NCBI GenBank assembly: GCA_016748015.1
Contig: JAAOMT010000741.1
Span: forward strand, 724,120-788,119
Source of the DNA: Geosiphon pyriformis uo1
Lineage: Eukaryota > Fungi > Glomeromycota
Direction of reading: 5' to 3'
DNA length: 64,000 bases
Part shown: piece by piece, positions 3,959 through 61,961 of the stretch
Layout: each line of letters starts with the position of its first letter
Position numbering within the stretch: the first letter of the stretch is position 1
Notes under the pieces: model-generated
Database searches by the model: none
The model's input: only the letters and a program-made list of their open reading frames with translations
What the model was told of the DNA's origin: nothing
Made by a program: the position numbers and the translations under genes

Positions 3959-5067
3959 TTATATTAACAAAGATTCAGGAAAAGCAAAAAAATTCTGACT
4001 ATCGTAATAACATTGATTTCTAAATTGTTTTTCTACTTCATCCAATAAGATATGAACTTGCTTTTCGAGTGAGAAGATTTTATGAACCAAATGGAAATGG
4101 GCTTGTTTTCCTTCATCAATTGTGACTTCATAGCCAAGGTCAGTGCCTCTATATAGATTTTCTATAAATGGCAAGGTCAATTTTAGCATACAATCTTTGA
4201 GAATAATTTTTGACTTTAATATATTTCAAAACTCTTTATTAGATTACCTGAAATTTTCTGACCAATAAATTTTGGGATAACAAGGTTTTCATTGCCAATG
4301 TTTTGGTTAAAAATTTGCTCATCATAAGAGTAACTTCCTTGTAAATTCTCGTCACCGTTTTGAGAAAAGCAAGGATTCATGTCTAATTCATCGTAAGATA
4401 AATTTGGCGTAAAAAATTGAGTGTCCGATTTTGTTTGTTGATTCTGCGAAAAGGTTTCAAAAGGATTGGTAACAGATATGTAGGAAGTGTTGCCGTAATT
4501 TGAATCGGAGCCGAGTTCTGTGTGTACTTTTGCAACCTGAGTTATAGGCATTATCGGGTCAGGTGAAATTTGCTCAGACGTCTTTGAAGAATTTTTGCGA
4601 TTCATTTGGATAAAATTTTGGTCTTTTTTCAAAGACGCTGTCTTATTAGACGAATTGGAATCGATTGATGAAGGTGTCGTAGAATGGATTGAGTTTGAAA
4701 TTTCATGATGATACTCGACAAATTTTCTCGGGAAAATTCCATCTCGTATCTTTGCAAATGCTAACTTTGCTTCGGCAACCATTTGATTATATTTAGCCCT
4801 TACGTGCTCAGGTTCCCGAACCCAGAGTTTTGTGGTCATTAGTGAAAGGTCACTCATTGTGGGATGATATTTTTTTGCGTTACATTCTTTTTGAACAGCC
4901 ATTCTGTAGGCTAAAAACGCGTTAGGAACTTTGGAAAGTTTGTTACTGCGAAGCTTTTGAAGAGCATTATTCATTAATTCATCAATCGTGAGATTAGGTG
5001 GAAATTTGGGTCGAACAATTGCCGATTTACGACCTACGTGATCAGATTTTTTAAAATTTGATGACAT
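3959..5067 (-). CDS. MATA-type HMG-box transcription factor, 2 exons (5067-4248, 4161-3959), ~340 aa
   Basis: HMG box: KVPNAFLAYR...MSDLSLMTTKLWVREPEHVRAKYNQMVAEAK, preceded by RPKFPP. An 86-nt GT..AG intron (4247-4162) with a GCTAA branch-like site joins ORF 4216-5067 in frame to ORF 3959-4189. Confidence 0.85.
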
Positions 5068-23313: not shown

Positions 23314-25830
23314 ATGTCCGAAAAGGCTTTATTACCTTTCCCTGAATCACGTCCAGGTCTCAAAGAAAAGATTAAAGATATTGCAAAAAATTTCTCTAAT
23401 TACACTCATAGTTATGTAAAATCACTTTTTCCAATTGTTGGTTGGATAGGACAATATAATCTAACATGGCTATCTGGTGATATGGTTGCCGGTTTCTCTG
23501 CCGCTTCTGTGGTTATTCCTCAAGGATTGGCTTATGCAACCATTGTTGGAGTACCATTGCAATACGGACTCTATTCTTCTTTCGTCGGGGTTTTCTTTTA
23601 TTCCTTATTTGCAACTTCAAAGGACATTACAATTGGACCAACGATTGCTTTATCGCTTATCACTGGGCAAGGTGTTACTAAAATTCTGGAGCACACAAAG
23701 GTAAATTTATTTACCTTTTTTTGAAAATTAGAGATTTTGGATTAAAAAAATTTTCAAAATTCTTTCTTAATTAAATTTTAGGAATATGAAAAATTTGAAA
23801 TTGCTTCTTGCTTTGCCTTAATCACTGGATTGATTTCAATTTTTATCGGTTTATTACGCCTTCGAATTGTGGTTGATTTCATTCCAGCACCAGTTGTTAG
23901 CGGCTTTACTTCTGGATTCGTTCTCATAATTGTCGGTACTTCTATTCCAAAACTTCTTGGGATCAAGAAAATCTCGAGTAGTCAGGCCTCCTACTTGGTT
24001 TTCAAAAATTCATTTGATAAAATTGAAGAAACTAAATGGACAGATTTTTTAATGGGATTTTCTGCTTTAATTTATCTTTATGCCATAAAATATGGGTGCA
24101 GATATGCCATAAAAAGATGGCCAAAATATAAAAAATTTTTTTTCTTTGTTAGTATAGTTCGTTTTATTACCTCGATCCTTATCATGGGATTTATTGCTTG
24201 GTTACTGAGTGATCAAGGTAGAAAAGATCCTCCTGTCTCAATCTTAAAAAAGGTCCCAAGTGGTTTGCATTTTGGAATTCCGCGAATTACCTGGGATCTT
24301 GTAAAACGTATGGTAGAGTTTTTGCCTGGTGTAACTCTCATTTTAATTTTGGAACACATCTCAATCGCAAAAAATTTTGGGAGAATTAATGACTATCGAG
24401 GTATTTTTTTTTTAAAAAAAAAAAAAATGATTGAGAATTTTGTTAGAACTTTTTATTGATATTAATGCTTCTTTTTCTTAAAACCTCAGTCGATCCAAGT
24501 CAAGAATTTATTGCGATCGGTCTTACAAACACTCTTGGGACATTTTTCGGTGGATTCCCTACTACCGGATCTTTTACTCGTACCGCGATAAAAGCTAAGG
24601 CTGGTGTTCGAACTCCGTTAGCTGGAATTTTTTCTGGAGCTTTGGTTTTAATAGCCCTTTATTTTTTGACTCCTGCATTTTATTATATCCCTGATTCAGC
24701 TCTTGGGTACATACTACTATTTATTATTATTATCAATATTATGAATGGGAATATTTGAAAACTAAAATGATTTTTTATTTTATTATAGTGCCCTTGTTTT
24801 TCATGCAGTGATTGATATGTTTTCAAGGTTTTCATACATGAAATATCTATTTAAAACTCAATGTAAGTTCCCTATTAATTACAAACTTAATAGTTTTGAA
24901 AATTTATGAGTTAACTTTCATCTAAATAAGTTAAATAAATTTCATTACAGTCTGGGATTTTGTAGTTTTTATTATGACTCTGGTTTTCACATTCTTTTTT
25001 AACATTGCTGTGAGTATTCATCAAGTTTCTTTAAAACAATTCAAAGCTTGATTTAATTTAAAATCTTTCAGATTGGAATTTATGTCGGAACCGCAGTTGC
25101 ATTTCTGGTGTTAATGGTCCGTATTAGTCGTCCACCTCTTGAAGCTTTAGGTCGTGTCATTTTAAAAAGCGCTAATGAAACAAAAGTATCGGAGAAAGAA
25201 TACGCTTACGTACCTATTGGACATCCTTCATTTAAATCCGCCAGGAACCCTTCTGATGGTGTAATAATTTTTCGATTTGAAGAATCTCTCCTCTACCCAA
25301 ATGCCAATTATTCGGTTGAAAAGATTATCGATTATGTTAAATGTAATACTCGTCGAATTCATCGACCGGCCGAAAAAAAGGGAGATCGACCATGGAATGA
25401 CTCCAGAAAATTATCAAAAGAAAAAGAAGAATTTCATCAGAACTTACCAAGGCTCCGTGCTTTGATTTTTGATTGTTGCGCCGTACGCATTATAGATTCC
25501 ACAGGAGTACAAGCTTTGTTCGATATTAAAAATGACCTAAATAAATACGCGGGTCATGAGGTTGAATACCATTTTGCCAATATTCTAGATAGCAATATTC
25601 AAGCTATCTTGTTAGAAGCCAGTTTTAGAAGTTCCGGTAAAGGTGCAAAACAGCTCGTTGCTCCTGGTAGCACAAGTGATAGGGACCAAAAGCGTCTAGA
25701 AGCTTCTAAATCAAAAGATGAAGAAAGTGGTGAAGTAAACGCAGAAAAATCGATAACAAGTCAAACGCCAAAAAATTTTCTCCATTTGACTTTGAACGAA
25801 GCAATAGAAGCGGTCAACGTTAACTGGTAA
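23314..25830 (+). CDS. SulP/SLC26 sulfate permease with C-terminal STAS domain, 6 exons (23314-23700, 23782-24400, 24490-24706, 24789-24862, 24951-25009, 25072-25830), ~704 aa
   Basis: SulP motifs GDMVAG..VIPQGLAYA, GLYSSF, GFTSG, EHISIAKNFGRINDY, QEFIAIG, TGSFTRTAI..GVRTPLAG; STAS motifs FRFEESLLYPNA and LIFDCCAVRIIDSTG. All five introns are GT..AG and in frame. Confidence 0.93.
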
Positions 25831-30557: not shown

Positions 30558-31726
30558 ATGGTTTACCTTTTCGATATTCCAGCCTTCTTTATTTTGTTTC
30601 GCGAAACATTAGAATGTGCTGTTATTCTTTCCGTCATGCTTGGTTTCCTCGACAAACTATTACCAGATCCAAGTGATGCATCACTTAAAAAAAAATTTCA
30701 ACGTCAAATCTGGGCTGGACTCATCGCTGGTTTATCAGTGTCTCTTATAATTGGGGCTATATTTATCGCAGTGTTTTATACTGTAGCAAGAAATTTGTGG
30801 GAAGATAGCGAACCTATATGGGGTCAGTAACTCAAAATTTTCTTGTCAAACTACTCCTTATCTCAATGTTATGATGATTATAAGTTTGATTTGATTTTTG
30901 ATTATTTATTATTTATTATTTATTATTTCTAATTATTTCTAATAACAGAGGGTATATTCTCTTTGATTGCTTCAATTATCATAACAATTATGGCCTTTGG
31001 GATGCTTCGGGTGAAACATTGGAAACTAAAATGGGAAAACAAGTTACGGAACGCAACTGAAAACCATCTCAATAAACAAAAGAAAGGTGAAAAATGGGCG
31101 TTATTTATATTACCATTTACTGTCGTTTGCCGTGAAGCATTAGAATCCATCGTTTTCATTGCAGGGGTAAGTTTCTGAAAAAATATTCAATTTCGTATAA
31201 ATTTGAGATCAAAAAGATCTAAATTCGAATTGATTCCTGATCTTCCCAGATCGGATTCGATAAACCTGCTACTGGTCTTCCAATTCCTGCTATTCTGGGT
31301 ATCCTTGCTGGTGCTTTGGTCGGTTACATAATTTACCGAGGCTCACACAACGTAACGTTAGAAGTATTTTTCAATATCATGACCACAATATTATTCTTTA
31401 TCGCCGCCGGACTTTTTTCCATATGTTCTCATGAACTCCATGAAGCAAGTACAGGTGAGGATGAGGACATTGCTTGGGAACTGGACTGTTGTGATCCAGA
31501 TACACACCAAGGATGGGGAATTGTTAAAGCTTTATTCGGATGGAGAAATAAGGCAACTATTGCTTCAACCGTCGCATATTTTGTTTACTGGGCCGCAGTT
31601 TTGCTTGGTTTGCTTTTTATGTATTTGAGGGAACAAAAGAGGTCTATCAATGGTCCAAACAAAACTTTGACGAATGAGGACACTAATAACAGTTTTTCTG
31701 AAAAAGATATTAAAGTTCCCGTATAA
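30558..31726 (+). CDS. FTR1: High-affinity iron permease FTR1 family, 3 exons (30558-30822, 30949-31166, 31250-31726), ~319 aa
   Basis: Two RExxE motifs (FRETLE, REALE), WEGIFSLIA restored across intron 1, AAGLFS and ALFGW. Introns are GT..AG and in frame. Confidence 0.93.
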
Positions 31727-46093: not shown

Positions 46094-49000
46094 TTAGCAT
46101 ACACAGTTATCGCCACCTGGGCAACCCTGAACATGGGAAGAAGTGGTAATGGTAGATGATGTGGCCTCCCCACAGAAGTTACCATTATTATTTCCATTGA
46201 ATGATCCAATCGTGTTATACAAAGGTTTTGCTTCACAACCTGAATCACCAGGAATGACAGAGGTTTTTAAGCAATGACCGGTGGTCCCATCTGTCTTTAA
46301 GCAATCACCAGTATCATCTTTTGTTGGAGATTTCCCAGTATTATCAATATTGTCTTCACATTCCCCAGTTTTGCTAGCTGTAATTGGGTATGTCTTATCA
46401 GTGTCACCTTTTGGAAGCTTCTCGCTATCACCATCCTTGCATTCACCAGTTTCACCGTCTGTTGGTTTTACATATCCACCAGTTTTGCTATCTGTTATGG
46501 GGTATTTATCACCAGTGTCACTTTCTGGAAGCTTGTCACCGGTATCTTCCTCGCATTTACTAGTTTTGCCTTCTATTGGAGGTTTGGGGATATCCTCGCC
46601 TGTTGGTTTTAAATACTCATCCGTCTTGCCGTCTGGTGTTGAGAGTGCTTTATCAGCGGTATCTTTTGGAAGCTTGCTAGTATTACCGGTATCCCCTTCG
46701 CATTCACCAGTTTTGCTGTCTGTTGGTTTTACATATCCATCAGTTTTGCTATCTGTTATGGGGTATTTATCACCGGTGTCACTTTTTGGAGGCTTAGCAC
46801 TGTCACCAGTATCTTCTTCATATTCACCAGTTTTGTTTTCTATTGAAGGTTTACCACTATCCTCGCCTGTTGGTTTTAAATATTCACCCGTCTTGCCGTC
46901 TGGTGTTGAGAGTGTTTTATCAGCGGTATCTTTTGGAGGCTTGCCAGTATCACCGGTATCCCCTTCACATTCACCAGTTTTATTGTCTGTTGGGCTTACA
47001 TATCCATCAGTTTTGCTATCTGTCGTGGGGTATTTATCGCCGGTGTCACTTTTTGGAGGCTTAGCACTGTCACCAGTATCTTCCTCATATTCACCAGTTT
47101 TGTCTTCTATTGAAGGTTTACCACTATCCTCGTCTGTTGGTTTTAAATACTCTTCCATCTTGCCGTCTGGTGTTGAGAGTGTTTTATCAGCGGTATCTTT
47201 TGGAAGCTTGCTAGTATTATCGGTATCCCCTTCGCATTCACCAGTTTTGCTGTCTGTTGGTTTTACATATCCATCAGTTTTGCTATCTGTTATGGGGTAT
47301 TTATCACCAGTGTCACTTTCTGGAAGCTTGTCACCGGTATCTTCTTCATATTCACCAGTTTTGTTTTCTATTGAAGGTTTACCACTATCCTCGCCTGTTG
47401 GTTTTAAATACTCATCCGTCTTGCCGTCTGGTGTTGGGAGTGTTTTATCAGCGGTATCTTTTGGAAGCTTGCTAGTATCACCGGTATCCCCTTCGCATTC
47501 ACCAGTTTTGCTGTCTGTTGGTTTTATATATCCATCAGTTTTGCTATCTGTTATGGGGTATTTATCACCGGTGTCACTTTTTGGAGGCTTAGCACTGTCA
47601 CCAGTATCTTCTTCATATTCACCAGTTTTGTTTTCTATTGAAGGTTTACCACTATCCTCGCCTGTTGGTTTTAAATATTCACCCGTCTTGCCGTCTGGTG
47701 TTGGGAGTGTTTTATCAGCGGTATCTTTTGGAGGCTTGCCAGTATCACCGGTATCCCCTTCACATTCACCAGTTTTGTTGTCTGTTGGGCTTACATATCC
47801 ATCAGTTTTGCTATCTGTCATGGGGTATTTATCACCAGTGTCACTTTTTGGAGGCTTAGCACTGTCACCGGTATCTTCCTCATATTCACCAGTTTTGTCT
47901 TCTATTGAAGGTTTACCACTATCCTCGCCTGTTGGTTTTAAATAATCACCCATCTTGGAGTCCGGTATTAGGAATGTTTTATCGGTGGTGTCTTTTGGAG
48001 GCTTTCCAGTATCACCGGTATCTTCAGCAGTGTCTTTAGTTGGTTTTATTTCTTCATCTACATTGGAGAATGGTATTAATCTATTATCAACACTATCTGT
48101 TAGAGGCTTGTCAGTATCACTGGTATCCCCCTCGCGTCCACCAGTTTCGCTATCTGGTGGTTTTACATACCCACCAGTTTTGCTATCCGCTATTGGGTGT
48201 GTTTTATCTGTGTCACTTTTTGGTGGCTTGCTAGTATCGGTATCCTCTTTGCAATCACCAGTATCTCCTTCTGTTAAATATTTGCCAGTATCCTTACCAG
48301 TTGGTTTTAAACGACTCTCCGTTTTGCTATCTACTATTGGATATATTTTATCAGTGTCACTTGTTGGTGGTTTTTCAGTATCGATATCCCCCTCGTATTC
48401 ACCAGTATCGCCTTTTGTTAGAGATTTGCCAGTATCCTCGCCCATTGGTTTTGTTATTGGGTATGTTTTATCAGTATCACTTTTTGGTGGCTTGCTAGTA
48501 TCGGTAGTCTCCTTGTATTCACCAGTCTCTCCTTCTGTTGGATATTGGCCAGTATCTTCGCCCGTCTTGCTATCTGTTATTGGGTATGTTTTCTCGGTGT
48601 CAATTTTTGGTGGCTTACTAGTATCGGTATCCCCCTCGTATTTACCAGTTTCTCCTTCTGTTGGAGATTTGCTAATATCCTCGCCTGTCGGTTTTAAATG
48701 ACCACCTGTTTTGTCGTCGATTTTTGGATATTTATCACCAGTGTCACCTTTTGGAGATTCACGAGTATCGCCATCTGTTTTTGAGCAATTACCATTGGTG
48801 CATTTTGTCGAGCTAACAGCTGTTACTTTGCAAATTCCAGAAGTACAGACTATTGGAATACCATTGTTATTGCCATTATTATTGCCATTGTGATCACCTT
48901 TGTTGTTGTTGCCATTTAGGTTACCATTTAGATCGCCAAAGTTATTATTTCCATTTCTATTGCCATTATTATTTCCAATACTGTTATTTCCATTTTCATT

Positions 49001-49225
49001 TCCGTTGCCCGATCCAATATTACCATTACCATTACCGTTGCCGTTCCCAATCACTTTGGATCCACTACAATTACCACCATCGCATGTTTTTTCACAATCT
49101 CCACTAACCAGTGAATTAGCTGATGGAGCCGGTACAGGAGCTGCTGACACAGATGGATTACTTGTTGATAAAAGAAGGAGAGCAGAAGAGAGTAGGTAAG
49201 AATAAAAAACAATTTTTTTTGTCAT
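46094..49225 (-). CDS. Secreted 1043-aa repeat protein, G/N-module family member A
   Basis: Signal peptide-like MTKKIVFYSYLLSSALLLLSTSNPSVSA. A Cys-flanked GNGNG/GNNNG module is followed by D/T/K/G/P-rich tandem repeats and a C-terminal IGSFNGNNNGNFCG plus Cys-rich tail. Single exon. Confidence 0.85.
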   Translation of the reverse strand: MTKKIVFYSYLLSSALLLLSTSNPSVSAAPVPAPSANSLVSGDCEKTCDGGNCSGSKVIGNGNGNGNGNIGSGNGNENGNNSIGNNNGNRNGNNNFGDLNGNLNGNNNKGDHNGNNNGNNNGIPIVCTSGICKVTAVSSTKCTNGNCSKTDGDTRESPKGDTGDKYPKIDDKTGGHLKPTGEDISKSPTEGETGKYEGDTDTSKPPKIDTEKTYPITDSKTGEDTGQYPTEGETGEYKETTDTSKPPKSDTDKTYPITKPMGEDTGKSLTKGDTGEYEGDIDTEKPPTSDTDKIYPIVDSKTESRLKPTGKDTGKYLTEGDTGDCKEDTDTSKPPKSDTDKTHPIADSKTGGYVKPPDSETGGREGDTSDTDKPLTDSVDNRLIPFSNVDEEIKPTKDTAEDTGDTGKPPKDTTDKTFLIPDSKMGDYLKPTGEDSGKPSIEDKTGEYEEDTGDSAKPPKSDTGDKYPMTDSKTDGYVSPTDNKTGECEGDTGDTGKPPKDTADKTLPTPDGKTGEYLKPTGEDSGKPSIENKTGEYEEDTGDSAKPPKSDTGDKYPITDSKTDGYIKPTDSKTGECEGDTGDTSKLPKDTADKTLPTPDGKTDEYLKPTGEDSGKPSIENKTGEYEEDTGDKLPESDTGDKYPITDSKTDGYVKPTDSKTGECEGDTDNTSKLPKDTADKTLSTPDGKMEEYLKPTDEDSGKPSIEDKTGEYEEDTGDSAKPPKSDTGDKYPTTDSKTDGYVSPTDNKTGECEGDTGDTGKPPKDTADKTLSTPDGKTGEYLKPTGEDSGKPSIENKTGEYEEDTGDSAKPPKSDTGDKYPITDSKTDGYVKPTDSKTGECEGDTGNTSKLPKDTADKALSTPDGKTDEYLKPTGEDIPKPPIEGKTSKCEEDTGDKLPESDTGDKYPITDSKTGGYVKPTDGETGECKDGDSEKLPKGDTDKTYPITASKTGECEDNIDNTGKSPTKDDTGDCLKTDGTTGHCLKTSVIPGDSGCEAKPLYNTIGSFNGNNNGNFCGEATSSTITTSSHVQGCPGGDNCVC
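46430..48020 (-). repeat. Coding tandem array of about six 267-bp (89-aa) units, one 261 bp
   Basis: Anchor TATTG(A/G)AGGT at 46574, 46841, 47108, 47369, 47636 and 47903. More diverged sub-repeats extend to ~48750. Confidence 0.95.
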
Positions 49226-51995
49226 AATTGTTATTTTTTTAATATATAAACACGATCGAATATTATTTAATGGGCAAAAAAAATAAATACGATGTTAGAA
49301 AAAAATTATATTTATTAAAAGATTAAAAGAGAACAATAAAGAAAGATGAAAACAAAAGAGAAAGACAGAGACTATGATAATAAGGAATAGATCAAGAAGA
49401 TCAACCTTTCTTTGGTGGTAATGAATGATTTACTAACAATTAAAGAGTGGACAGTTTTGTTACTTTCTTGAAAATTCAATCCAAGTGGGCTTTTATATCT
49501 TCTCAAAAGAAATCCTTATTTTTTGTTAACGTTGAACTCAAGAAGCGTTTCTTTGTATTTTATGGCGATAAATACTTTTGGTTTATTTCTCACCTCGATA
49601 TATGATGATTCAATAAGAAATTTATGGATCATCTCATTATTTCCTGCTTAAATTAATTAAAAGTTACTAAAGAACTTTAAGGACTCATAAAACTCCGGCA
49701 TAATTTACTCAAGGTTTTGAGTTCTCAGCGGGTGACAAAAAAATTTGAAAAAAGTTGATAAACGCCAAGAAAAAATTAAATTCATTCATGCGGGTTAAAA
49801 ATTAATCTCACAAATTTCAAATTTGACATTATATCACAAGTCCTTGTAACAATTTATTGGGAAAAATAAATAATTGTAAAGAATCACCAAATAGTTGTTC
49901 CCAATATTTCATGACGTTGAAGTGCTCATATTTACTAATTTTATTTAAAAAAATAAAAAATTTGATCTGTATTGTTCAAATCTTGAAATAAATCTTTAGC
50001 ATTAAATATTATTAGAAATGAAAGAATTAACTGCGCCAATCAGATTCAATTATTTTTGTTAAAACTAAGACACTATCTCATCAATAATTGGAAAAAAGAT
50101 TACCTGAATATAACTAGCATTATCTTTAAACTAAAATTTGGAAAAAGAAATATGTTCTTGCCTAAAGAGTAAAAGAAATTTGAAAGTAAAAAAATTTAAG
50201 GATTTTTATTCGGGATTAAATTTATTATTTGAATACACACAAAAAGTAGACATTGTTTGTGAACAAATCATATGAAATGAAAATTTAAAAGAAAATTTAA
50301 GGCAGAATGAATAATATAATAAATTATTTCATTAAAAAGCCTTCAAAATTTTCATTTAATTAACGAAAATTTTAAGACCACATTTGAAATAATAATGCAA
50401 CGTGTCTTTTAATTATTATTATTATTATTATTGTTGTTGTTGTTGTTCTTGTTATTAATTATTAGGGTCAACATTGGAAAATGAAAATTTTGATTGTTAG
50501 GGAATATTTATTATTGTCATCAATGATAAAACTTATAAGATTTTCTGATTTTTAATGGAGTATCGGTGATTGAAAATTAGCTTTATAATCTAGAAAAATA
50601 CTAACCCTTCGTGTTTTTGGTATTTTGTCAGAGGAAAACTAGCAGCAGCAGCCTACAATTAAAATTTAATTGAGAGTTAAAATTTTACATCCCCCGCAGG
50701 CTGATGTTAAAGAATTGAACATTTGAAAAAAAATTTGGGAACCTGCAAAGAATATTTTCTAGTTCAAAATATTGAAACGATGTTTAAGAAATTAGAATTT
50801 CTATTTAATATTTTTAATTTCAATATTTAAGATTTAATTACTGCACCGCATAAATGAAAAACATTGCTTAATTATAGCTTGCATATTTATTCAATTTTTT
50901 TCTTTATAATTATTTTTAATAAAAGGAGATTATCATGACATTATATCCTCATCTAACCCATCAATTAGAAATTCTATATTGTTGGTTTTCGTGTTTTTGC
51001 TGGGATTATTTTTTACCATTTTTTTTTGGTTATTAATTATTAAATAAAACCTATCTAATCATATCTAATCATATCTAACAAAAATATATTAATATCATTA
51101 TTTCAATTAATAATTGGCTTTGTTTGATCTATATGAAAAAATTTGAATAGCTTTTTATTCATATGTTTTATTTTTATATATGTATATATATATATATTCT
51201 ATTTATTCATGTGAATTTTTGCATTGAGTGAATTTTTTTTTCTTGTGTAATTTAAAAATGTTTTTGAAATAATTTTTTTATTTGAAATATTTTTGTTTAT
51301 TAATTTCTTTACTTTAAGATGTATTAAGAGTATTGTTTTCTGTTTTTTTTTCTTTATTAAAAAAATGATTATCTCATCCTGATATCAATCTTTTACTTTG
51401 GAATTTAGATACTAAAAAAAAAAACTTTGCAATAAAGCATGGTAGAAATTTTAAAGAACAAAAAATGGATGTGAATCTTTATTTTATTCAAAAGATTTTA
51501 ATTAATAAAGTAGATAGGTAAAACTTCCAAGACTGATTCATTTGGACAAAAATAAAATAATTAATTAGTTTCTTTTATAGATTTTAAAGCGTAAGAGATG
51601 AAAACTATTTATCACCATTCATTGTAAAAAAAAATTATAGATCATGACTGATTATAAAATTTGCAAACATTAAAACATTTTTTTTTAATTTGAAGAAACA
51701 ATTGATGATTACATAAATTTTTGTGCGGAAAAAAAGGCACACGATCAATCGATTAAAAATTTTATTGAAGAGCTTAGGCCGTCACAGAGTCAAAATAGAA
51801 ATTTTTTTAGAACAGATTCAATTTATTTGGGGACTATCTTGATGTTAATCATGATCATACGAAAGAAACTCATTTGATGCTAGTTAGTGGAACTGACAAT
51901 TCTATTAACTGCTCGCTATCTAAAATCTGAAAATTATCAAATATTTTGATTCTAATAATGAAAAATTTTCCGAGCATTTTTAGACAAAAAAATAT

Positions 51996-52394
51996 TTAAT
52001 CACAAGGAGTAAATTTCTTAGGTTGGTGTTTCTTTTTTTGGAACTTCCCCTTCTTAAACTTGCGCTTGTGACCATCGTGATCAGAATCAGAACCAGAATC
52101 AGAACCAGAATCAGAATCTTCTTTATTGAAAGACTTTTTGACTCGGCCGTCAAGATTACCAGTCCATCTGTTTTGATTGTTAACCCCGTTACCATTTCCG
52201 TCATCGACACCATTGTTGTTACCTTTGTTCCAATTGCCGTTATTGTTACCATCGTAGTTACCTATGTTGTCAAAATCATGTCCTTTGCCATCACGTTTGT
52301 CAAGAATTGGAGTTGCACTCGCAGAAGGTGAGCCAGAAAACAAGGCAAGAGCGCTAGCGATAACAGCAGCCAAGACGAGAGTAAGTTTGCCCAT
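51996..52394 (-). CDS. Small secreted protein, G/N-module member B (132 aa) with Kex2-like site and basic tail
   Basis: Signal peptide, LDKR, FDNIGNYDGNNNG...RWTGNLDGRVKKSFN, DSDSGSDSGSDSD, then KRKFKKGKFQKKKHQPKKFTPCD. TATAAAA lies ~130 bp upstream. Confidence 0.85.
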   Translation of the reverse strand: MGKLTLVLAAVIASALALFSGSPSASATPILDKRDGKGHDFDNIGNYDGNNNGNWNKGNNNGVDDGNGNGVNNQNRWTGNLDGRVKKSFNKEDSDSGSDSGSDSDHDGHKRKFKKGKFQKKKHQPKKFTPCD

Positions 52395-53288
52395 TGTCAG
52401 GAATTAAAGGGTGAATAATGAGAGATTTATTTTCAGTGAAGGTATATTCGACCTTTTACTTTCTAACTTTGAAAATAAAAGATTGGATAAAAATCGAAAA
52501 ATTCAAACCAATCGGTTCTTTTTATACTTCAGAATTTCTTAGTCAAACTCCTTTTTCACTAATTTGGTCAAAAAATTTAATTGTTTTCACTCACATTCTT
52601 TGAATTTTTAAGAAAAGGAGGTTATTATTTTTAACAAACAATTAAAGAAAAAGAATTACGAAATAAATTAATCAAAATATATTTTGCCCGTTTCCAACAA
52701 TTAGAATATGGTTAAAATATTTTAACAATTATTTTAATTATCTTTTTATAGAATCTATAAAAGTCGGGTGAAGCGTTAATCAGGAGCTGAAAATTTAAGT
52801 TTAATAATAATTAATATGAAAAGTAAATGTATCACAAGAATTTTTTTTAATATTCTCTTAAAGGCACAAACCCTTACGAAATCACGAGTAAATGTGAAAC
52901 CAGAATCGAATCCTGAGCCCATGTCATTTAAAAAATTTTTAATGATAAAATACCTGATAATTTGCTACCCTAACAATCAGTGGATAAATATCACGAATGA
53001 CTATTCCCTTTAAAAACTTTCCTTAATATTTTTTTAGTAAACTATTAATACGGGAAATCAGAGGGTCTGATTAACACGTAATATGAATAATCAACATGAC
53101 ATCATCTGATTGATGTCATTGGCAGAAGATTCTTTGGGGAATCACAATATCAATTAATTGAAATATAATTAGGAATCTTTAACATGGTTTTATTGTTTAT
53201 AGAGCAACAAAAAAAACTTTTTAGTGATGAACGGGTGAAAATTTCAAGTTAAAAAATGTATAACAACATTTTGCTGAAATTTCGAATA

Positions 53289-54254
53289 GAAAATGGGACA
53301 AAAACTTTTTGGAAAGCGAATATTTTTTAATAAGATATACGATCATCATTCATATCAATTACGAGCTTATACCGCCATTTCATCGATTCAACCAACCCCT
53401 TCTGCAAATTCTTCCAAATTTTTCGACATTCGTTTTCCACAATACTCTTAACAATAATACACAAATTCTCGATATAATTTAAATCAGTCTATAACTTTGG
53501 GCATATTGACTATAAGAAATTCGTGAGCAATCTGACTCTTATGCTTCGGATCATTGTCTTGTTGGAACTGCCACCTTTCGTCTCATCTTAGGTAAATGGG
53601 TACGAAGGATTACTACAGAAAATTCGTTATTCATTATTCTAAGTAAAATAGAATAAACTTGTTTTACCTTCCTTATATAGAAACTACCCTATGCAAAAGA
53701 TTTTTTTCGATCTTTTGTTAGGGCGCGAGTTGGTCATAAACCTCTATATCACCATTCTACCATGTTTCTAAAGAGACAAAAAGTTGTTTCATAGTTCGAT
53801 TCCAATCGTAATACAAATTTTTATGGGCCTATTCTATGCGCTTTTCTTTAAGGAGATTCGTAAGCATTGGTGTTGTTAGAGGAAGGTTTTTTTTATATCC
53901 AAGAATTGCTAAATTCCTTCCAATTGGTCTATAGCCTATGTTCTATTGTTCCTTTTTTTCGATGTTACAATATATTGTAGAGAGAGGGATGTTTGTCGGC
54001 GTCTGTATTTCTTTTGCAACCCGCAAACCTTTCGTTCCACAAATGTATTATGGTTTGACGTTGTGTTTCTTTCGCGCAAGTTGACATTTCATACTCAAAA
54101 ATAGTAGCAATCAGACACGAAAATATTTTACAGACTTAGTCACGTACCTTGTGTTCTATTCCATGTTACCGAACGGCGAATCGACCCTAAATTAGTTAAA
54201 GTCGAAATCTTTATGTGGATATCCATATTTTCCAAAAAGTCTTGTGCTACACTG
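53289..54254 (-). mobile_element. Degenerate Tc1-like element
   Basis: Transposase relic from MSTCAKETQRQTIIHLWN (54087) to LVESMKWRYKLVIDMNDDRISY* (~53330). The right end (reverse complement CAGTGTAGCACAAGACTTTTTGGAAA) is followed by TA. A degenerate matching left end ..ACAAAAACTTTTTGGAAA lies at ~53298-53315. Confidence 0.7.
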
Positions 54255-54970
54255 TATATCCGAGGTTCTTTAAAATTTGAGTATTTACGGATTTTTTTGT
54301 ACTTTCGAATTTCCAAAATTTTGATTCGAGTTCCTTAGCTAGAAAAATTTTTTAACAAAGATTTTTGATTTTAAATGAAAAAACTGTATGCGCTTTATAC
54401 TATAGATTTAGGATTATATAATTGAAAGTAGAGTAGAAATTATTAAAAATATTTATTTTTTAATATCTCTTAAAACGTTTCAAAATTTTTTTATTTTTTA
54501 AAATAATAATTTTCCTTAATATAATTTTAACATCTTTCTAGAAAAAAATATGTTACGATGAAGCGATCCAAATTTGAACACTGGTTTATTCAAAGTTCAG
54601 ATTTTAGAGAAAAATATTTATTGTCTATGCTCACTTGAGAGGAGGTTAAGAGTTTTAAAAATCCTCACCTCTCCCATATTATTATTTGCCGGGACAAAAG
54701 CTGTCAAAATTTCTAGATAATAAATTTTGGACAAACCCTGCTTTTTCGGTTTTATTCACGTTGACTTTGTCAAATTAACTCTACTTAATGGCACGATGAA
54801 ATGAAATCCCCCCCAACTCATTATCAATAAATATCATTTTTATAAAAAAGTAGAACTTTATATTATCAAGAATTCAGCATATTTAACGATGAAATTTGGG
54901 AGATCATTAGTAAAAAAAAAAAAACCGAATCTAGAAAGCCACTTCTCAAGATAGGCAGAAAATTTACTAT

Positions 54971-55234
54971 CTAATCGTCGGATTCGTCCTCCACATTGAA
55001 AGAGTCATCAACAGTTCCGTTAAGATCACCTCTCCATCGATTTTCGTTATCGAGCCCGTTGCCATTTCCATCATCGACTCCGTTGTTATTACCATTGTTG
55101 TAATCGCCGTTATCGTTACCGTCAAGGTTGCCAATGTCCCTGTAACTTGGAGATGCAATTGTCGAAGCAGAGGTAGCTAACAGAAGAAGAATAGTGGTAA
55201 AAACAACGGTGAAGGCTAAAGATATTTTGGTCAT
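54971..55234 (-). CDS. Small secreted protein, G/N-module member C (87 aa, acidic)
   Basis: Signal peptide MTKISLAFTVVFTTILLLLATSASTIA, then YRDIGNLDGNDNG...RWRGDLNGTVDDSFN. TATAAAAA lies ~115 bp upstream. Confidence 0.85.
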   Translation of the reverse strand: MTKISLAFTVVFTTILLLLATSASTIASPSYRDIGNLDGNDNGDYNNGNNNGVDDGNGNGLDNENRWRGDLNGTVDDSFNVEDESDD

Positions 55235-56239
55235 TTTTATTTAGTTAGTTAAGAAAATTTAGTTGTTTTATTTGTTTTTTAACCCTCTGGTGTTTAAAAG
55301 ATGAAAGCTTGGATGAGGTATAAATTTTCAGTGAGACAAACTCTTTTTATATTTAAAAACATGTTTCATCTTACGATATTAAGAAAGTCATTCCTAATAT
55401 TAAGTGAAATTTCGATAAATTTTCATTTTTGAATCAAATAGACAAACAAACAATTATACTCAGTTACACAACGATACATTGTTTCGGTTCGCATCATAAA
55501 ATAGATTAATTTCATTATGATGCAATTTGAAATTAAATATTAAAAATAATTATTGTTTTAGATAATCAAGAATCTAATTTAAATCTCGACGTAATAATTT
55601 TTTGGAGAAAAAAAAAATAATGGGATTCTCTTGATTGTCGAAAACCCGTAAAATAAATCAACAAAGTTTAATAAAGGAAATTATCATTCTTATCTGTTTC
55701 ATGCACATAAACCTCGAAAAGCGACTGAAAATCACAAGATTCTAAAACTAAATGGGGAGGGGAGGAGAGGAGGGTACTCTGTTGATCTTTTTATTTTTTT
55801 ATTTTCTAATCAAATAGTAGTTAAATACGTTAAAGTGATGAATGAAATAGAAAAAGTTATTACGGCTTTTCATTTGAAATAATCAAATTAATAATCAAAT
55901 TAATATAAATAAAACTATAATTCTCTAAAATTAATAATTTCAAGTTTTATAATTTCAAAATTCTTTTTTACAATAAAAATTTGATTTTCTTAACTATTAT
56001 TATGTGTTTAATCATTATATTAAGATTTATAAGAAAAACATAAAATTACATATATATATATATATATATATTATTTAATTAAAGAGCGAGGCCCAACCGC
56101 TATCTAGTACAATAAATATCTTTGTAAATGTTAAACAATAATTTGTCAAATGAAAAAAAAAATCAAATCATTCAATGTTATTGCTATTTATTTTTTTGCT
56201 TTGATATTTTTATTTCAATTTTAAGAAAATCTTTATATA

Positions 56240-57583
56240 CAGGGGGGTATAAAAAATATTGGACACTTTTATAATATTTTATATAAAAGAACTAACTTAT
56301 GAATCGTTTATTATATTAAAATACATGTTAGTGGTTTGTTTGACCCCCATTTGCTTCAAGAATAGCTTGAACTCGACGTGGCATAGACTTGATCAAATTA
56401 CGATAGTAATTTACAGGTATCGCATCACATTTTTCCTTAACCCACTGTTCCAATTGTACAATATTTGAGGGTTGTGAATTACTTTGACGAATTTTAACTT
56501 CAATATATGACCAAAGATTTTCTATTGGAGTAATATCAGGACTTTGTGGTGGCCAAGGAAGTAATTCAACATTTGAAGAGGTAAGAAAAGAACGCGCGAC
56601 TTTTGATGTGTGGATTGGTGCATTGTCTTCCTGAAAAAAAAAATTTTTTTTAGTTTTTTTTGCATGAAGTTTTACCGTAGGAATTGCATAATTAGCCAAG
56701 GTTTCGCGGTGTATAACTCAAGTAATATGACCAACCAAAGGAACTAAAGGACCCAAACCAACCCATGAAAAACATCCCCAAAACATGCGACCAAAGCTTT
56801 TTCTAACTGTGGCTGCAATACAATCCTTATGAAACTCTTGGGAAGGTTTACACCATACACGTCCAAATCCTGTACTTCTAAATTGTGTATATGTAGATTC
56901 ATCTGACCAAACAACTCGTTTAAAATCTTCTACTGTCCAATTTTCATAAGTAAGAGCCCATTGTAAACGTTTTTCTTTATTTGATTTGGAAATTAATGGC
57001 TTGAGACGAGGAATGCACGAGCGAAGTCCTTCTTGAGCTAATCCATTTCGAATAGTTTGTATAGAAATAGATTTGTTGGTATCTTTAATAAAATTTAATC
57101 GTATTTGAGAAAGAGTTTGGCGGCGGGTTTCTTTATTCTCCATTATTGAATATTTGAGTTGTTCACGTGCGCGTTTGTCAAGAATTTGTGGTCAGCCCGT
57201 TCGTTTTTTAGGAAGTTTTTTTAGCTCGTATGACTTCCATACACGTATTACAGAAGAACGTGAACATCCAATAGTCGTGGAAATCTCACTGTTTGTATGT
57301 CCTAACTTTTTTGCAGAAATAATCCCTCCTTTTTGGTATTCAGAAAGTTCTTTTCCAAGACACATTTGATGCGGTAAATTTTTTCACGACAAGAATGTTT
57401 GATATTTTATATATACGCGTATGATCCAATGTTGTGTTTTACAAGGACGCGATTTATGTTGATTTGTAGATTATAACTATAAGTAATTATAAAAAAAATT
57501 ATGGCTTAAATTGGTAATGGTATTACAATATATAGCCTTTTTTATATATTATATTAAGTGTCCAATACTTTTTTACCCCCCTG
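56240..57583 (-). mobile_element. Full-length Tc1 (DD34E) transposon, 1344 bp, TA-flanked
   Basis: TIRs CAGGGGGGTATAAAAAATATTGGACACTT (56240-56268) and its near reverse complement (57556-57583), with TA on both sides. Confidence 0.93.
56328..57365 (-). pseudogene. Tc1 transposase (345 codons, one frame, two internal TGA)
   Basis: MCLGKELSEYQKG.. HTH, G*P (GRP), WSDES, FQEDNAPIH, SPDITPIENLW, with 34 residues between D and E. In-frame TGA at 57192-57194 and 56718-56720. Confidence 0.9.
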
Positions 57584-57794
57584 TATACTTGCTAAAACAA
57601 TATTAATATTAAATTACTGAGTAAATGATTAGATTAATAAATTTTTCTAAAAATAAGTCTTTTCATTGAAAATTTATAAACAATCAGTTTTAAATTTAAT
57701 ATCTCAAACTTTTTATATAATTTCCATCAGAATTTCTTTAAATATTTCAAACTTTAAATCTAAAGAGAAAAAAACCATCTACCAGTGATTATAA

Positions 57795-57836
<42 letters not shown>

Positions 57837-57843
57837 CACTAAA

Positions 57844-58167
57844 TCATAAAGTATCTATGCACCAATTATTTTGATTGTTAATTCCATTGCCGTTCCCATT
57901 ATTATCACCAATGTTATTATTACCGTTATTGTTTCCATTATTGTTCCCAATAACCCTATAGGTCATTTGATCGTCGTAATATTCCTTTGACAATCGGACA
58001 CATGACGATACTTTTTTAAACAATCATAATCACCAGAAGAACATTGGCAATGGGAGCTATCATTGTCTTGATGATGAAGTTTCTCAATAATCACATGAAT
58101 CGCATTAGTGTTATAGGACAAGCAAGGTAGCCCGAACAAGAGAAATAGTGAGAGTTATTTTCGACAT
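57844..58167 (-). pseudogene. G/N-module family member D, frameshifted (absent from ORF track)
   Basis: MSKITLTISLV.. signal-like start, Cys-containing middle (HCQCSSGDYDCL), then YRVIGNNNGNNNGNNNIGDNNGNGNGINNQNNWCIDTL*. Two frameshifts are needed to join these parts. Confidence 0.75.
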
Positions 58168-59562
58168 TTTACACGGCAAATAAATAAATAAATAAAGGAT
58201 TGTAAAAAGTGTTTAAAAATAAGGCTATTTGGGTAATTTTGGATTCTAAATTAAGCTTTATTGTTTATTTGACTCTTTGAAATATTCAAGTAGAATAAAA
58301 GTTTTTTGATGAGCAAAAATCCCAAATGGTAACTTCTTTTATGTTTAAAGCTTTCTCGCTGAAGCTTTGAATTCTTGAGCCATTTATTTGGCTGTAATAA
58401 TAATTTCATCCTAAGGCCAGAACAAAAAGACTTAATACTCGTTTTTTCTAAAAAATTTCCCTTCATTTAGAATCAGGAGAGGAATTTGGATGAGCTGACA
58501 TTTCACATGAATAATTTCTTTTGAAAAATAATGACAATATTATGAATAATTGCACTTAAACATAGCTCTAACCAAAAGTCATATTGTGTAAATTCGAAGG
58601 GTTTCTGTCAGTGTTCCACCTCATTAATGCATGATTTACTTTAAATAATCACAAGTATGTTTTTTTTTCATTTATCCAAAAAAATTATAACCTGATAAAC
58701 AAATCAAATTATTGTTGACAAAATTCTGAATACATTACTCCTCATTATAAAGGGAAAAAAGAGTCCATTGAGAAAAGAAATACTCTGTTCTTTTTTTCAC
58801 TTAATAAGAGTCCCAATTCATTCTAATTTCTGTGAATATTACTCCTAAATTTCAAGTAAAATTCTGTTTGAATTTTTCTTAATAAAAAATTCGTTTTAAA
58901 ATAATTTTTTTACCAAAAATCGAAACTAATTTTTTTCATGTTCTCATTTGATACGAATGAAATTGAGAAATTATCAACTTAAAAATAATGCTAATATATT
59001 TTTTGCCTTACACAAAGATCTGAATATAAAAGTGGTAGTTAGTTCTTTTTAGATTTAAAAATTGCTTGTTTTTGATAGATCATAATGGAGAAAAAAAGAA
59101 AAATTCAATCTTCGTAAAAAAAGCTTTGTCAATCATTTTAGAAATAAATGAAGTTATTAATAACAATTTGAAGTTAGAAAAGTTTAAAAGAATTCACAAA
59201 AAATTCATTATGAGAATATCTGAAGCAAACCATCTTTTTTTAATTTTTTATTGTCCATTTGGATTAAATTTTATTTTCTTCAAATGTAGAAATGTGGAAA
59301 TGTGAAATATTTTCCAAGTGAATATTCTATATTATATTGACACAAATTTTAAAAAAATCTATGCTAGATAATTCTTGAAAACACAAAGTTAACCTATCAC
59401 AATAAAAGAATGGAGTCTCCTTTCTTACAGTGTGTAAATTGATAATTGCAAAGGGGAAATTTGAAAGTTAATACGATTATTGTGTTTCGTCAAAAAATTT
59501 ATTTATTCTAAAAAGTATTAGTAGAAAGAGAAAAATAATTTTATCTAGACCCAGTTTAGTAA

Positions 59563-59838
59563 CTAGTTATTAAATGATTTATGAACGCAACCATCTAGAC
59601 AACCTTGCCAGGAATTTGTGTTACCAATTCCATTAGCGTTTCCCTCATTGACACCGTTGTTGCTACCCCGGTTATTTTTACCATTATTGTTACCGTCTTT
59701 GTTACCAATGTTTTTGAACTCAACTTTGTTGGGTTTTATCTTCTTTGAACACGAGACAGCAGATACAAAAGAGGAAGTTCCTAACAAAATAAGAGTGATC
59801 ACGACAATAAAAAAAATACTGAAAGTAATTTTGGCCAT
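59563..59838 (-). CDS. Small secreted protein, G/N-module member E (91 aa, basic, Cys-containing)
   Basis: Signal peptide MAKITFSIFFIVVITLILLGTSSFVSA, then FKNIGNKDGNNNG...SWQGCLDGCVHKSFNN. TATAAAAA lies ~75 bp upstream. Confidence 0.85.
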   Translation of the reverse strand: MAKITFSIFFIVVITLILLGTSSFVSAVSCSKKIKPNKVEFKNIGNKDGNNNGKNNRGSNNGVNEGNANGIGNTNSWQGCLDGCVHKSFNN

Positions 59839-61961
59839 ATTTGTGTGATAGTTTTTTTTTTTTAGGAAAGATGGGAATTTGGATGGATAAGAAAAATTTC
59901 AATTTGGGATTTTTATATTTGAAATTTCTTTCTTAATAATTATCCTAAAAAATGGGGCAGATTTATTATCACCTTGTGGGGAAGTCTTAAAATGCTCCTG
60001 CATAATATCAACGTATAATTTTTAAGAGCTTTAAAAAAGTACCAATCTTTAGATAGTACTTTTTGTCTCTTAAATCAATGCAATCAGGTGTTTTTTAAAG
60101 TTATTTTACCCTTTAGAAAGTAAGCGAAATAAGATTCAGCCACAGATTCAATTAGTATGGGTTTTATCTAAAGTTAAATGAAAGTTTTTGTTTAGCTAAG
60201 GGCCTAAAACTCTTTTTTTTTTCCAAAATAATTTTTAATGTGTGTCACCTATTATTTTGTCATAGTCTCGTTAATGAAAATTATACGGTTTTAAAGAAAT
60301 TTTACTGCTATAAGCTCATGGAACCCTGAAAATTATGTTAAGATCTTAAAGAGCAGCCAATTAAATTCAAATTTATTATTAGTCGAAAAATTTAAAAGTG
60401 TTGCATTCATTTCAATAGTAATATTTGTTAAAATTATAAGTTTGAAGGAGGTGAGTTTATTTTGTAAAAGAAATATCTCATCTAATAATAAGAAAAAAGA
60501 CTTGTTTATGATGAACTGTAAATGAAAGAATATTTAGTTTCAACGGCGCTCATGCCTCTTATTTTTACTAAAATAAATCCCATTTTGTCATCGTAATAGA
60601 TACATTATAATAATAATAATAATAATATTCATCTCATTTAGTTACTTCCCCTTACAAAAATTTTTCAAACATCAGCAGAAATCGAATAACCAAACAAACA
60701 AGAAAACTTTCAAGATTGGAAGAAGTCCAATTACCTTTGAACGGCTTTATCTTTCAAGAATGATTACCAAAAATATCCTCGCTTTGAAAAAATATATCAA
60801 AATCGTAAGGTTTAAATTTTAAAAATACAACTTAATAATTAAAATTTTAGATTTAAAAATTCCTCAATTTTTAGGGACTTTTTTGTTGAATTATAGTTTT
60901 TTTAACAATTAAAGATTCTTAAAATTATTTATAGATTTCAAAATACATATTTTAAAATCTTTTTCATTTTCTACGTGAGGAAACAGTTGTACAAAAACTT
61001 GACAGGAATCTCGGTATGGAACTATTCCTCTTTATTTATCCTTTTATTGTGATATCACAAAGCTTGGTAGTAGGCCATTTTTCGATTAATGATTTCAAAT
61101 TCATATCTTGAATTAGGAGGTAATAAAAAATGAAAGGTTTAGAGTTATTTACTTTTTATTATAGCTATCATCACTAAATTTCATTTTTTCTTTGAATATG
61201 AATATAATTGTTAGTTTTGTATTATAAATGCTTTAGTTTTCGTAACCGTCTAATATCATTAGCTGTAAATTTAGTAACTTTCTGTCTATCGGTTCCTTTA
61301 ATTGTTATTTTTTGTTATTCAAAAATTTTCAGACCAAGTTTTGCATAATATAAAATGACAATTGTCAAAATAAAATTATTTTCTTTATTTGTAGAATTAT
61401 ACTTATCTCGATACAAGATAATGGATCGAAAGATTTAAAAATTTCAAAATTTGAAAACACAAGTTTCGGATCTTATTTAAGTTTCCATAAATCTTTATAG
61501 GTGAATGTGAAGCTCGAAAAAGATCAAATTATTTTTCGCAAAAGAGAAATTTAAATTTCTTCTATTAATTGTTATCCATTTTTCTGGCTGAAAGGTTTTA
61601 CTAACACAATTTCAGCCACAAGTTTTAGGTAGCTTTAAATTTGTCGTCATATAATAATTAATAATTATTTATTCCTATTATAAGGCTAGCTATTAAATTG
61701 CCTAGTTACACAGCTAACCGTAAAGTTAGAAACTCTTTTTCTATGTGAATTACCACTTGCTGCCTACTTGTGAAAAAAAACTGTATAAAAAAATTATATT
61801 AAAAACACACATCTATTTCAGTAAAAAATTTTATGTTGTCAACCAAGGTAAAATATCAGCTGCCCGAAAGATCGTAATGCTAATTTTTGTGAATATATGT
61901 AAGTCATAGAGTTTATGTCAGATAATGAATGTTTAAAATTTACACTGACTTTTTCCATATT

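Follow-up and report, generated by a model that had tools for sequence, protein, structure and literature searches.

Secreted proteins rich in glycine and asparagine (GN-rich, by a criterion of 15% per residue) have been described from Ambispora leptoticha, Paraglomus brasilianum and Geosiphon (Schultz et al., 2022; PMC8786786). The Geosiphon members, GpRIC1-3 (MH580277-9), originate in a PhD thesis (Hoffrichter, 2018); all three carry KR motifs, and they supplied 22.3, 5.0 and 3.0% of all reads in a cDNA library (PMC8786786). A second point of reference is provided by the Kex2-processed repeat proteins (KEPs) and by the Rep1 repellents of Ustilago maydis, whose Kex2-derived peptides bind to the wall and are amyloid-like (Le Marquer et al., 2019; PMC6339444). 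The present study characterised a stretch of 64,000 nucleotides of Geosiphon pyriformis uo1 (GenBank assembly GCA_016748015.1, contig JAAOMT010000741.1, positions 724,120 to 788,119 of the forward strand; hereafter the window), which holds a cluster of five loci, here termed A to E. Three of these (B, C and E) encode small, predicted secreted proteins sharing an Asn/Gly module. As judged from the published description and from the sequences of the A. leptoticha (Amlep) and P. brasilianum (Pabra) members, this module is a short, diverged form of the GN-rich intrinsically disordered protein (IDP) / RIC family, and on the sequence evidence presented here B, C, E and four paralogues are intact genes under purifying selection with a common promoter architecture.

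The repeat that underlies the family is a 13-residue unit (13-mer), h-G-S-x-N-G-N-x-N-G-N-x-N. In Geosiphon, G occupies positions 2, 6 and 10, N positions 5, 7, 9, 11 and 13, and Ser, Asp or Asn position 3, while positions 1, 4, 8 and 12 are variable and often hydrophobic, aromatic or basic. The first 26 module residues are two consecutive, in-register 13-mers (module positions 4-16 and 17-29). Scored with a position matrix of the 13-mer, with the unit's own composition as background, the paired units total 14-25 bits in each module; shuffled sequences average about -17, and none of 2000 shuffles attained the observed value. Positions 7 and 11 accept Val or Ile in the Geosiphon sequence L019 and in the second unit of the B/C/E module. 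The two units are followed by an 8-residue linker ending in an invariant Trp, and then by a degenerate third unit, x-G-x-L-N/D-G-x-V-x-x-S-F-N, with fixed L, G, V/I and S-F-N. This Trp/Leu/Val/Ser-Phe-Asn tail, like the promoter block described below, is confined to the small subfamily.

The Amlep and Pabra sequences in the supplement of PMC8786786 have an M-T-K-I-T-type signal peptide and the same 13-residue register as found here. An hhalign comparison of A4 with the RIC-like paralogue L017 gave a probability of 96.5% and E 7e-10 over 59 columns covering the signal peptide and the first units, a score that comes partly from the signal peptide and from composition. The preliminary description of this DNA had not recognised the module as a named family. 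Since the signal type and the 13-residue register recur in the published GN-rich proteins, the module is not an unknown family, and it belongs with the GN-rich IDP / RIC proteins of Geosiphon, Ambispora and Paraglomus (PMC8786786). What is new is the single-module form with its own W/L/V/SFN tail, found in the searches made only in Geosiphon, and the occurrence of the same 13-mer in bacterial secreted proteins.

According to the open reading frame (ORF) list of the window, all five loci lie on the minus strand, and each starts with M-x-K followed by a hydrophobic stretch, as had been proposed (Table 1). The gapless alignment of B, C and E was likewise reproduced: it spans 51 columns and extends to four further paralogues of the genome, and 23 columns of the resulting seven-sequence alignment are invariant (I, nine G, ten N, V, W, L and S). 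With bias correction on, a hidden Markov model (HMM) of the module matched B, C and E with E values of 1e-23 to 6e-25, and D with 2e-6, among the six-frame ORFs of the window, where no other ORF scored below E 4. The supposed absence of introns fits the NCBI models of C (87 aa) and B (132 aa), which are identical to the plain ORFs. The window as a whole is AT-rich (GC 0.20-0.42), and the database proteins that its products match bear G. pyriformis locus tags (G9A89_).

A family-profile search of the 128-Mb assembly, in which the window corresponds to C645:724120-788119, returned 12 matches. Seven of the 12 are intact ORFs of 81-132 aa, and six fall inside about 46 kb of contig C645. As two intact members (L006 and L007) lie farther along this contig, on the strand opposite to B-E, the small-subfamily cluster reaches past the window. 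At least five copies are broken (D and L009-L012). The classification of D as a pseudogene was confirmed, with stops right after the signal peptide and the module cut after the Trp; the locus adjoins an (ATA)n run and a Tc1/mariner copy. On contig C80, an ORF with generic Asn/Gly 13-mers (C80:4441-4635, minus strand) lies about 7 kb from the small-subfamily gene L005, paralleling the position of A beside B-E; the two pairings hint that the short form arose next to long Asn/Gly forms.

A signal peptide is predicted in all seven intact members (M-x-K, a hydrophobic core of 17-20 residues and small residues at -3/-1), the peptides and their cleavage sites having been called by eye and with a crude rule. 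The predicted mature peptides measure 51-60 residues (105 in B) and range in pI from 4.1 to 9.6: that of C is strongly acidic (pI 4.1, net charge -13), whereas E and L005 are basic (pI 9.6 in both). In six members, Gly and Asn together account for 42-53% of the mature peptide; in B, with its long tail, the share is 31%. Protein E has three Cys in total, two of them inside the module. In B, the pro-piece ends in L-D-K-R (KR at 52293-52298), and the module is followed by an acidic SD-repeat and a Lys-rich tail with a second KR; no other member of B-E has a KR. N-glycosylation was considered as the cause of the Asn content and dropped, because only one N-x-S/T sequon occurs among the seven peptides. 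E and L005 are absent among the database proteins returned by the word-indexed search.

Pairwise ratios of nonsynonymous to synonymous substitution (dN/dS) over the module are 0.16-0.70, with dS from 0.31 to saturated; the ratio is below 1 in every pair, and positive selection is not indicated at this crude level. Of the 22 invariant columns whose codons are degenerate, 15 show two or more synonymous codons. Low dN/dS at high dS, together with this synonymous turnover, indicates that the module's amino acids were held while the DNA turned over. Upstream, each of the seven intact genes has a TATAAAAA TATA box with a block close to CATCCAAGCTTTCATC 32-37 nt downstream of it, and in B, C and E the block lies 47-95 nt before the ATG. 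This arrangement is absent from D, which has neither box nor block, and from A and the larger Asn/Gly (RIC-like) loci. The placement of box and block is consistent with a common core promoter and a common start of transcription, and the genes look functional. The low dN/dS, the synonymous turnover at G/N codons and the conserved promoter blocks agree with the earlier view of B-E as a co-oriented secreted family under constraint, beyond chance low complexity, as do the gapless seven-sequence alignment and the bias-corrected HMM matches.

Table 1. Features of the window and subfamily members elsewhere in the assembly. Positions are those of the window unless a contig is named.
Feature	Position	Strand	Basis or remarks
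Gene A, 1043 aa	46094..49225	-	signal peptide, 13-mer units, tandem repeats, Cys-rich C-terminus
A, residues 59-123, four to five generic 13-mers	48857..49051	-	module HMM with null2 off, domains of 32-38 bits
A, central array, 267-nt (89-aa) unit, 6.0 copies, 91% matches	46435..48022	-	Tandem Repeats Finder
A, residues 1003-1017, one Asn/Gly unit like the start of the B/C/E module	46175..46219	-	13.0-bit domain
Gene B, 132 aa	51996..52394	-	signal peptide, pro-piece, module (52122-52274), tail; database protein P0005
B promoter region	52474..52526	-	TATAAAAA at 52519-52526; diverged block copy at 52474-52489
Gene C, 87 aa	54971..55234	-	signal peptide and module (54992-55144); database protein P0002
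C promoter region	55300..55352	-	TATAAAAA at 55344-55351; block CATCCAAGCTTTCATC at 55300-55315
Locus D, pseudogene	57844..58167	-	M-S-K signal start, then several stops
Gene E, 91 aa	59563..59838	-	signal peptide, basic N-extension, module (59566-59718)
E promoter region	59870..59917	-	TATAAAAA at 59910-59917; diverged block copy at 59870-59885
L006, intact subfamily member	C645:788275-788514	+	genome profile search; about 160 nt beyond the window end
L007, intact subfamily member	C645:821895-822140	+	genome profile search; 34 kb past L006
L005, small-subfamily gene	C80:11685-11921		genome profile search
Tc1/mariner-type transposase copy (HTH_Tnp_Tc3_2 and DDE_3, split ORFs)	56328-57369	-	between C and D
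Sulfate permease (Sulfate_transp and STAS), at least three ORFs	23314-25830	+	Pfam families
Exon-sized ORF, FTR1 iron permease family	31316-31726	+	family match
ORF with weak HMG-box match	4216-5067	-	Pfam, just under cut-off

Gene A differs in composition from its surroundings (GC 0.42 against about 0.22 in the flanks). Its N-terminal units follow h-G-x-x-N-G-N-x-N-G-N-x-N and stand between Cys-containing pieces, and its single C-terminal unit lies within the Cys-rich terminus, with no downstream continuation in any frame; both groups of units are detectable only with the HMMER composition correction off. It had been suggested that A carries a partial module at both ends. Generic 13-mer units do occur at both ends; the B/C/E module itself does not, and A lacks the subfamily tail and promoter block. 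Between the ends, the central array is rich in K, T, D, G, E and P and flanked on both sides by older units of 114-144 nt; it has no second occurrence in the genome. Two plus-strand ORFs (46281-47945, 554 aa, and 47955-48701, 248 aa) were rejected as genes; they lie antisense to A and are artefacts of a tandem repeat poor in stops. The protein database has no entry for A as such, and the word-indexed search with A returned Geosiphon proteins only; the sole relative of A there is P0007, which matches through the Asn/Gly part. P0007 (G9A89_006378, 697 aa) joins an unrelated N-terminal half that has no signal peptide to KR-punctuated Asn/Gly repeats, and looks like a merged gene model.

As a query, the N-terminal Asn/Gly stretch of A gave 77 matches, spread over dozens of long ORFs of the genome, many of which combine a signal peptide with KR (Kex2) sites around near-identical peptides (e.g., L024, L014, P0008, P0010 and P0017). 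An exhaustive HMMER search of 1.84 billion representative proteins with the module found Geosiphon proteins only, apart from P0006 (1455 aa, with a long unit repeated five times), which was rejected as a relative because a short chance stretch, recurring with each copy, gives the match. A word-indexed search of 5.8 billion proteins with the family alignment also returned Geosiphon proteins only, and no relative was found when JGI metagenome contigs were scanned with the module; unannotated fungal genomes lay outside these searches. None of B, C, D or E matched a Pfam family at E <= 1, and nothing relevant came up for A or the long paralogues, so that the sequence kinship with PPE-MPTR proteins or curli raised in the preliminary description is not supported. 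The Curlin_rpt model had no match in the Pfam search, the likeness to CsgA being at fold level only (Z 8.0). RTX-type calcium rolls were dropped by eye, given the absence of a Pfam match and a different period. A sequence search of the PDB with a RIC-like paralogue yielded no match at E <= 10.

The 13-mer also occurs behind bacterial signal peptides, namely in a Sphingobium metagenome-assembled genome (MAG; L027), in cultured Geminicoccus harenae (L028), in a Flavobacteriales MAG (L025 and L026, with arrays of more than 20 units) and in a Rhodopila MAG (P0012); P0009, P0011 and P0014 are further protein entries of the bacterial set. The Geminicoccus locus has a GC content of 0.69 and its gene uses AAC/GGC codons. 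As the repeat is present in bacterial loci of GC up to 0.69, AT-rich slippage does not account for it. Pfam has no model for the bacterial look-alikes, apart from a weak DUF6160 match on one signal region, and their gene neighbours (dihydroorotate dehydrogenase, a Cys/Met PLP enzyme and unknowns) offer no functional clue. For so simple a repeat, common descent, transfer and convergence cannot be told apart from these sequences. P0013, a JGI metagenome protein of 172 aa, has 13-mer Asn/Gly units fused to a C-terminal piece that presumably resembles plant 'root cap' proteins; given this resemblance, the 13-mer may occur in other eukaryotes too.

A structural reading of the repeat was explored by prediction. 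For an 11-unit array of a larger paralogue (12-row alignment), the best AlphaFold2 model is all-beta, with a predicted local distance difference test score (pLDDT) of 65.8 and a predicted template modelling score (pTM) of 0.55; its second half reaches a pLDDT of about 80, and strands recur every 13 residues. With an exhaustive structural aligner, the top matches of this model are beta-solenoids only: antigen 43 (Z 11.5), MpAFP (Z 10.8; root-mean-square deviation 2.2 over 143 residues), the ryegrass ice-binding protein (Z 10.4) and CsgA (Z 8.0). Adhesins and acyltransferases match equally well, and Foldseek against the PDB returned nothing at E <= 0.001. Neighbours in the ESM Atlas include both beta-strand repeat proteins and bactofilin; an Atlas feature search, with a best score of 0.81, was uninformative. 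"Solenoid-like" is therefore used here as a working model of the 13-mer array. The Asn-ladder beta-solenoid foreseen in the preliminary description may thus hold for the array, to which the moderate all-beta model and the solenoid matches apply; for the B/C/E module it did not find such backing, since AlphaFold2 on C (seven-sequence alignment) predicted the signal helix as the only structure and gave the module a pLDDT of about 40.

The mechanism that we propose would begin with signal peptidase, and in B also Kex2 acting after L-D-K-R, freeing peptides of about 51-60 residues (longer in B through its tail) whose net charge would span strongly acidic to basic. Each 13-residue unit would form one coil of a narrow beta-solenoid, with Asn-Gly at the turns and Asn or Val/Ile pointing inward. 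Since two or three such coils would be too few to be stable by themselves, the short peptides would acquire their fold only through stacking, either with one another or with the long, very abundant RIC arrays. The site of stacking would be outside the cell, in the wall or at the symbiotic interface, and the hydrophobic/aromatic tail could cap the end of a stack or nucleate it. Gene A would be a separate, wall-type repeat protein with the same coils set between disulfide-rich pieces. In function, B-E may thus represent extracellular peptides stacking with RIC proteins. Stacking through narrow coils, for which Rep1 of Ustilago offers a precedent by analogy (PMC6339444), is a tentative proposal that we consider possible yet somewhat doubtful. 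Taken as a whole, the RIC-family assignment, the intact and selected genes and the proposed stacking together probably give the best explanation of the locus.

Several observations weigh against this explanation. The family has been treated as intrinsically disordered (Schultz et al., 2022; PMC8786786), and the isolated B/C/E module is predicted to be disordered as well. The array model is moderate, with two of five models above a pLDDT of 60 and three below 35, and Z scores of 8-11.5 are generic for any beta-solenoid and can be common for repeats. The hhalign score owes part of its value to features other than the units, as stated above. A complex prediction with four copies of the module scored 0.03, which counts for nothing either way. 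Finally, no transcript of B-E was seen: two RNA-like contig sets of uncertain type (X2 and X3) cover the Tc1/mariner element between C and D and not C, D or E, although contigs show presence and not absence. Among the sequencing runs checked, the source DNA run alone covers the genes, and none of those recorded as RNA contains the region.

The main rival holds that the peptides are soluble and disordered, acting as diffusible signals or effectors, for example on Nostoc or soil microbes, that bind a target without self-assembly. This would accord with the lack of predicted structure in the module, with the spread of pI from 4.1 to 9.6 among paralogues that keep a small number of residues fixed, a pattern also known from diversifying effector families, and with a subfamily that is species-specific in the searches made; the classic Kex2 pro-site of B, moreover, resembles those of peptide-hormone precursors (PMC6339444). 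Yet most of the fixed residues are G or N, set in the register of a structural repeat that bacteria share, and all pairwise dN/dS values are under 1, positive selection not being indicated at this crude level. We regard this alternative as fairly unlikely. It is also quite unlikely, in our estimate, that the 13-mer is an undescribed, very narrow beta-solenoid common to bacteria and the early-diverging Glomeromycotina, with the short Geosiphon-only peptides, as two coils and a hydrophobic cap in acidic and basic versions, serving as dedicated nucleators or end-cappers that would control how the very strongly expressed RIC peptides polymerise at the wall or around the enclosed Nostoc; if true, this would be a eukaryotic counterpart of the curli CsgA/CsgB logic. 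To our knowledge, Geosiphon is the sole fungus with a nitrogen-fixing cyanobacterium inside its cells.

The remaining alternatives carry less weight. That the loci are unexpressed or decaying, functionless side products of expanding Asn/Gly repeats in an AT-rich genome could be argued from the absence of transcript evidence, X2 and X3 covering the transposon only, from the broken copies, at least five in number, and from the absence of E and L005 among the returned database proteins; however, seven intact ORFs at saturated dS with dN/dS of 0.16-0.70, synonymous turnover at fixed residues, a TATA box and downstream block kept in intact copies only and the presence of the repeat in GC-rich bacteria make this very unlikely. 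Small, secreted, Gly-rich peptides invite a comparison with glycine-rich antimicrobial peptides, which might defend the fungus or police its cyanobacterial symbiont, and some members (E and L005) are basic; with most members acidic (net charge -13 in C), no amphipathic pattern and no Pfam match to a known antimicrobial peptide family, we consider this analogy highly improbable. Ice-binding or desiccation-protective beta-roll proteins were suggested by the match of the array model to two antifreeze beta-solenoids (3p4g, Z 10.8; 3ult, Z 10.4). As adhesins and acyltransferases match that model no less well, and as there is no sequence match, no demonstrable flat Thr/Val face and no fold in the predicted short module, such a role is extremely improbable.

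Other features of the window are listed in Table 1. The Tc1/mariner element is highly repeated, as the transposase exceeds its flanks in word depth about 100-200-fold in the source DNA run, and contigs of two other runs contain a transposase form in which a GT..AG segment (56414 to 56515) is skipped. The sulfate permease gene has introns, being split over at least three ORFs.

The finding is a variant of a known niche family, and its interest follows from that family. In a Geosiphon cDNA library, RIC transcripts reportedly ranked first in abundance, a single gene contributing 22% of reads. To this the cluster adds a conserved, selected single-module form with a distinct tail, and it fixes the exact 13-residue register; the same register in GC-rich bacterial genomes argues for a defined structure over mere disorder. 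As peptides of 51-60 residues can be made synthetically, the short forms offer the most tractable test of folding, stacking or signalling.

Compared with described systems, the PPE-MPTR proteins (N-x-G-x-G-N-x-G, Pentapeptide_2) are similarly Asn/Gly-rich with regular, short G/N spacing, but have a period of 5/8 instead of 13, whereas the Geosiphon proteins have no PPE domain, a eukaryotic signal peptide and no Pfam match. The bacterial 13-mer proteins come closer, sharing G at 2/6/10, N at 5/9/13, N or Val/Ile at 7/11, Ser/Asp/Asn at 3 and an N-terminal signal peptide; they differ in their prokaryotic hosts and in having neither the Trp/SFN tail nor KR sites. Among narrow beta-solenoids, the Lolium perenne ice-binding protein (3ULT), MpAFP region IV (3P4G), CsgA (8C50) and Ag43 (7KOB) align with the array model at Z 8.0-11.5, and the ryegrass protein in addition has an Asn/Gly-rich repeat and short coils. 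No sequence relationship to them appears in Pfam or PDB searches, however, their coils comprise 14-19 residues against 13, the array model is moderate and the B/C/E module alone is predicted without a fold. With Rep1 there is no sequence similarity; the wall-bound, amyloid-like state of its peptides corresponds to the mechanism proposed for the short peptides.

KEPs are defined by several near-identical, KR/RR-separated peptides that follow a signal peptide. Larger Asn/Gly proteins of Geosiphon (L024, L014 and P0008) resemble them in combining a signal peptide with near-identical, KR-separated peptides, and L024 falls under the KEP definition. B-E, with one module each, do not: C and E have neither a KR nor a repeated peptide, and B has a single pro-site and one KR in its tail. 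The RIC family of the same organism remains the closest system. RICs are long arrays or repeated KR-flanked peptides that dominated a cDNA library, whereas B-E, known here from genes alone, have one short module, their own Trp/Leu/Val/Ser-Phe-Asn tail and promoter block, and, in the searches made, relatives only in Geosiphon. Both share the M-x-K-I-[ST] endoplasmic reticulum signal, a high Gly and Asn content, the 13-residue register and, in B, the KR site.

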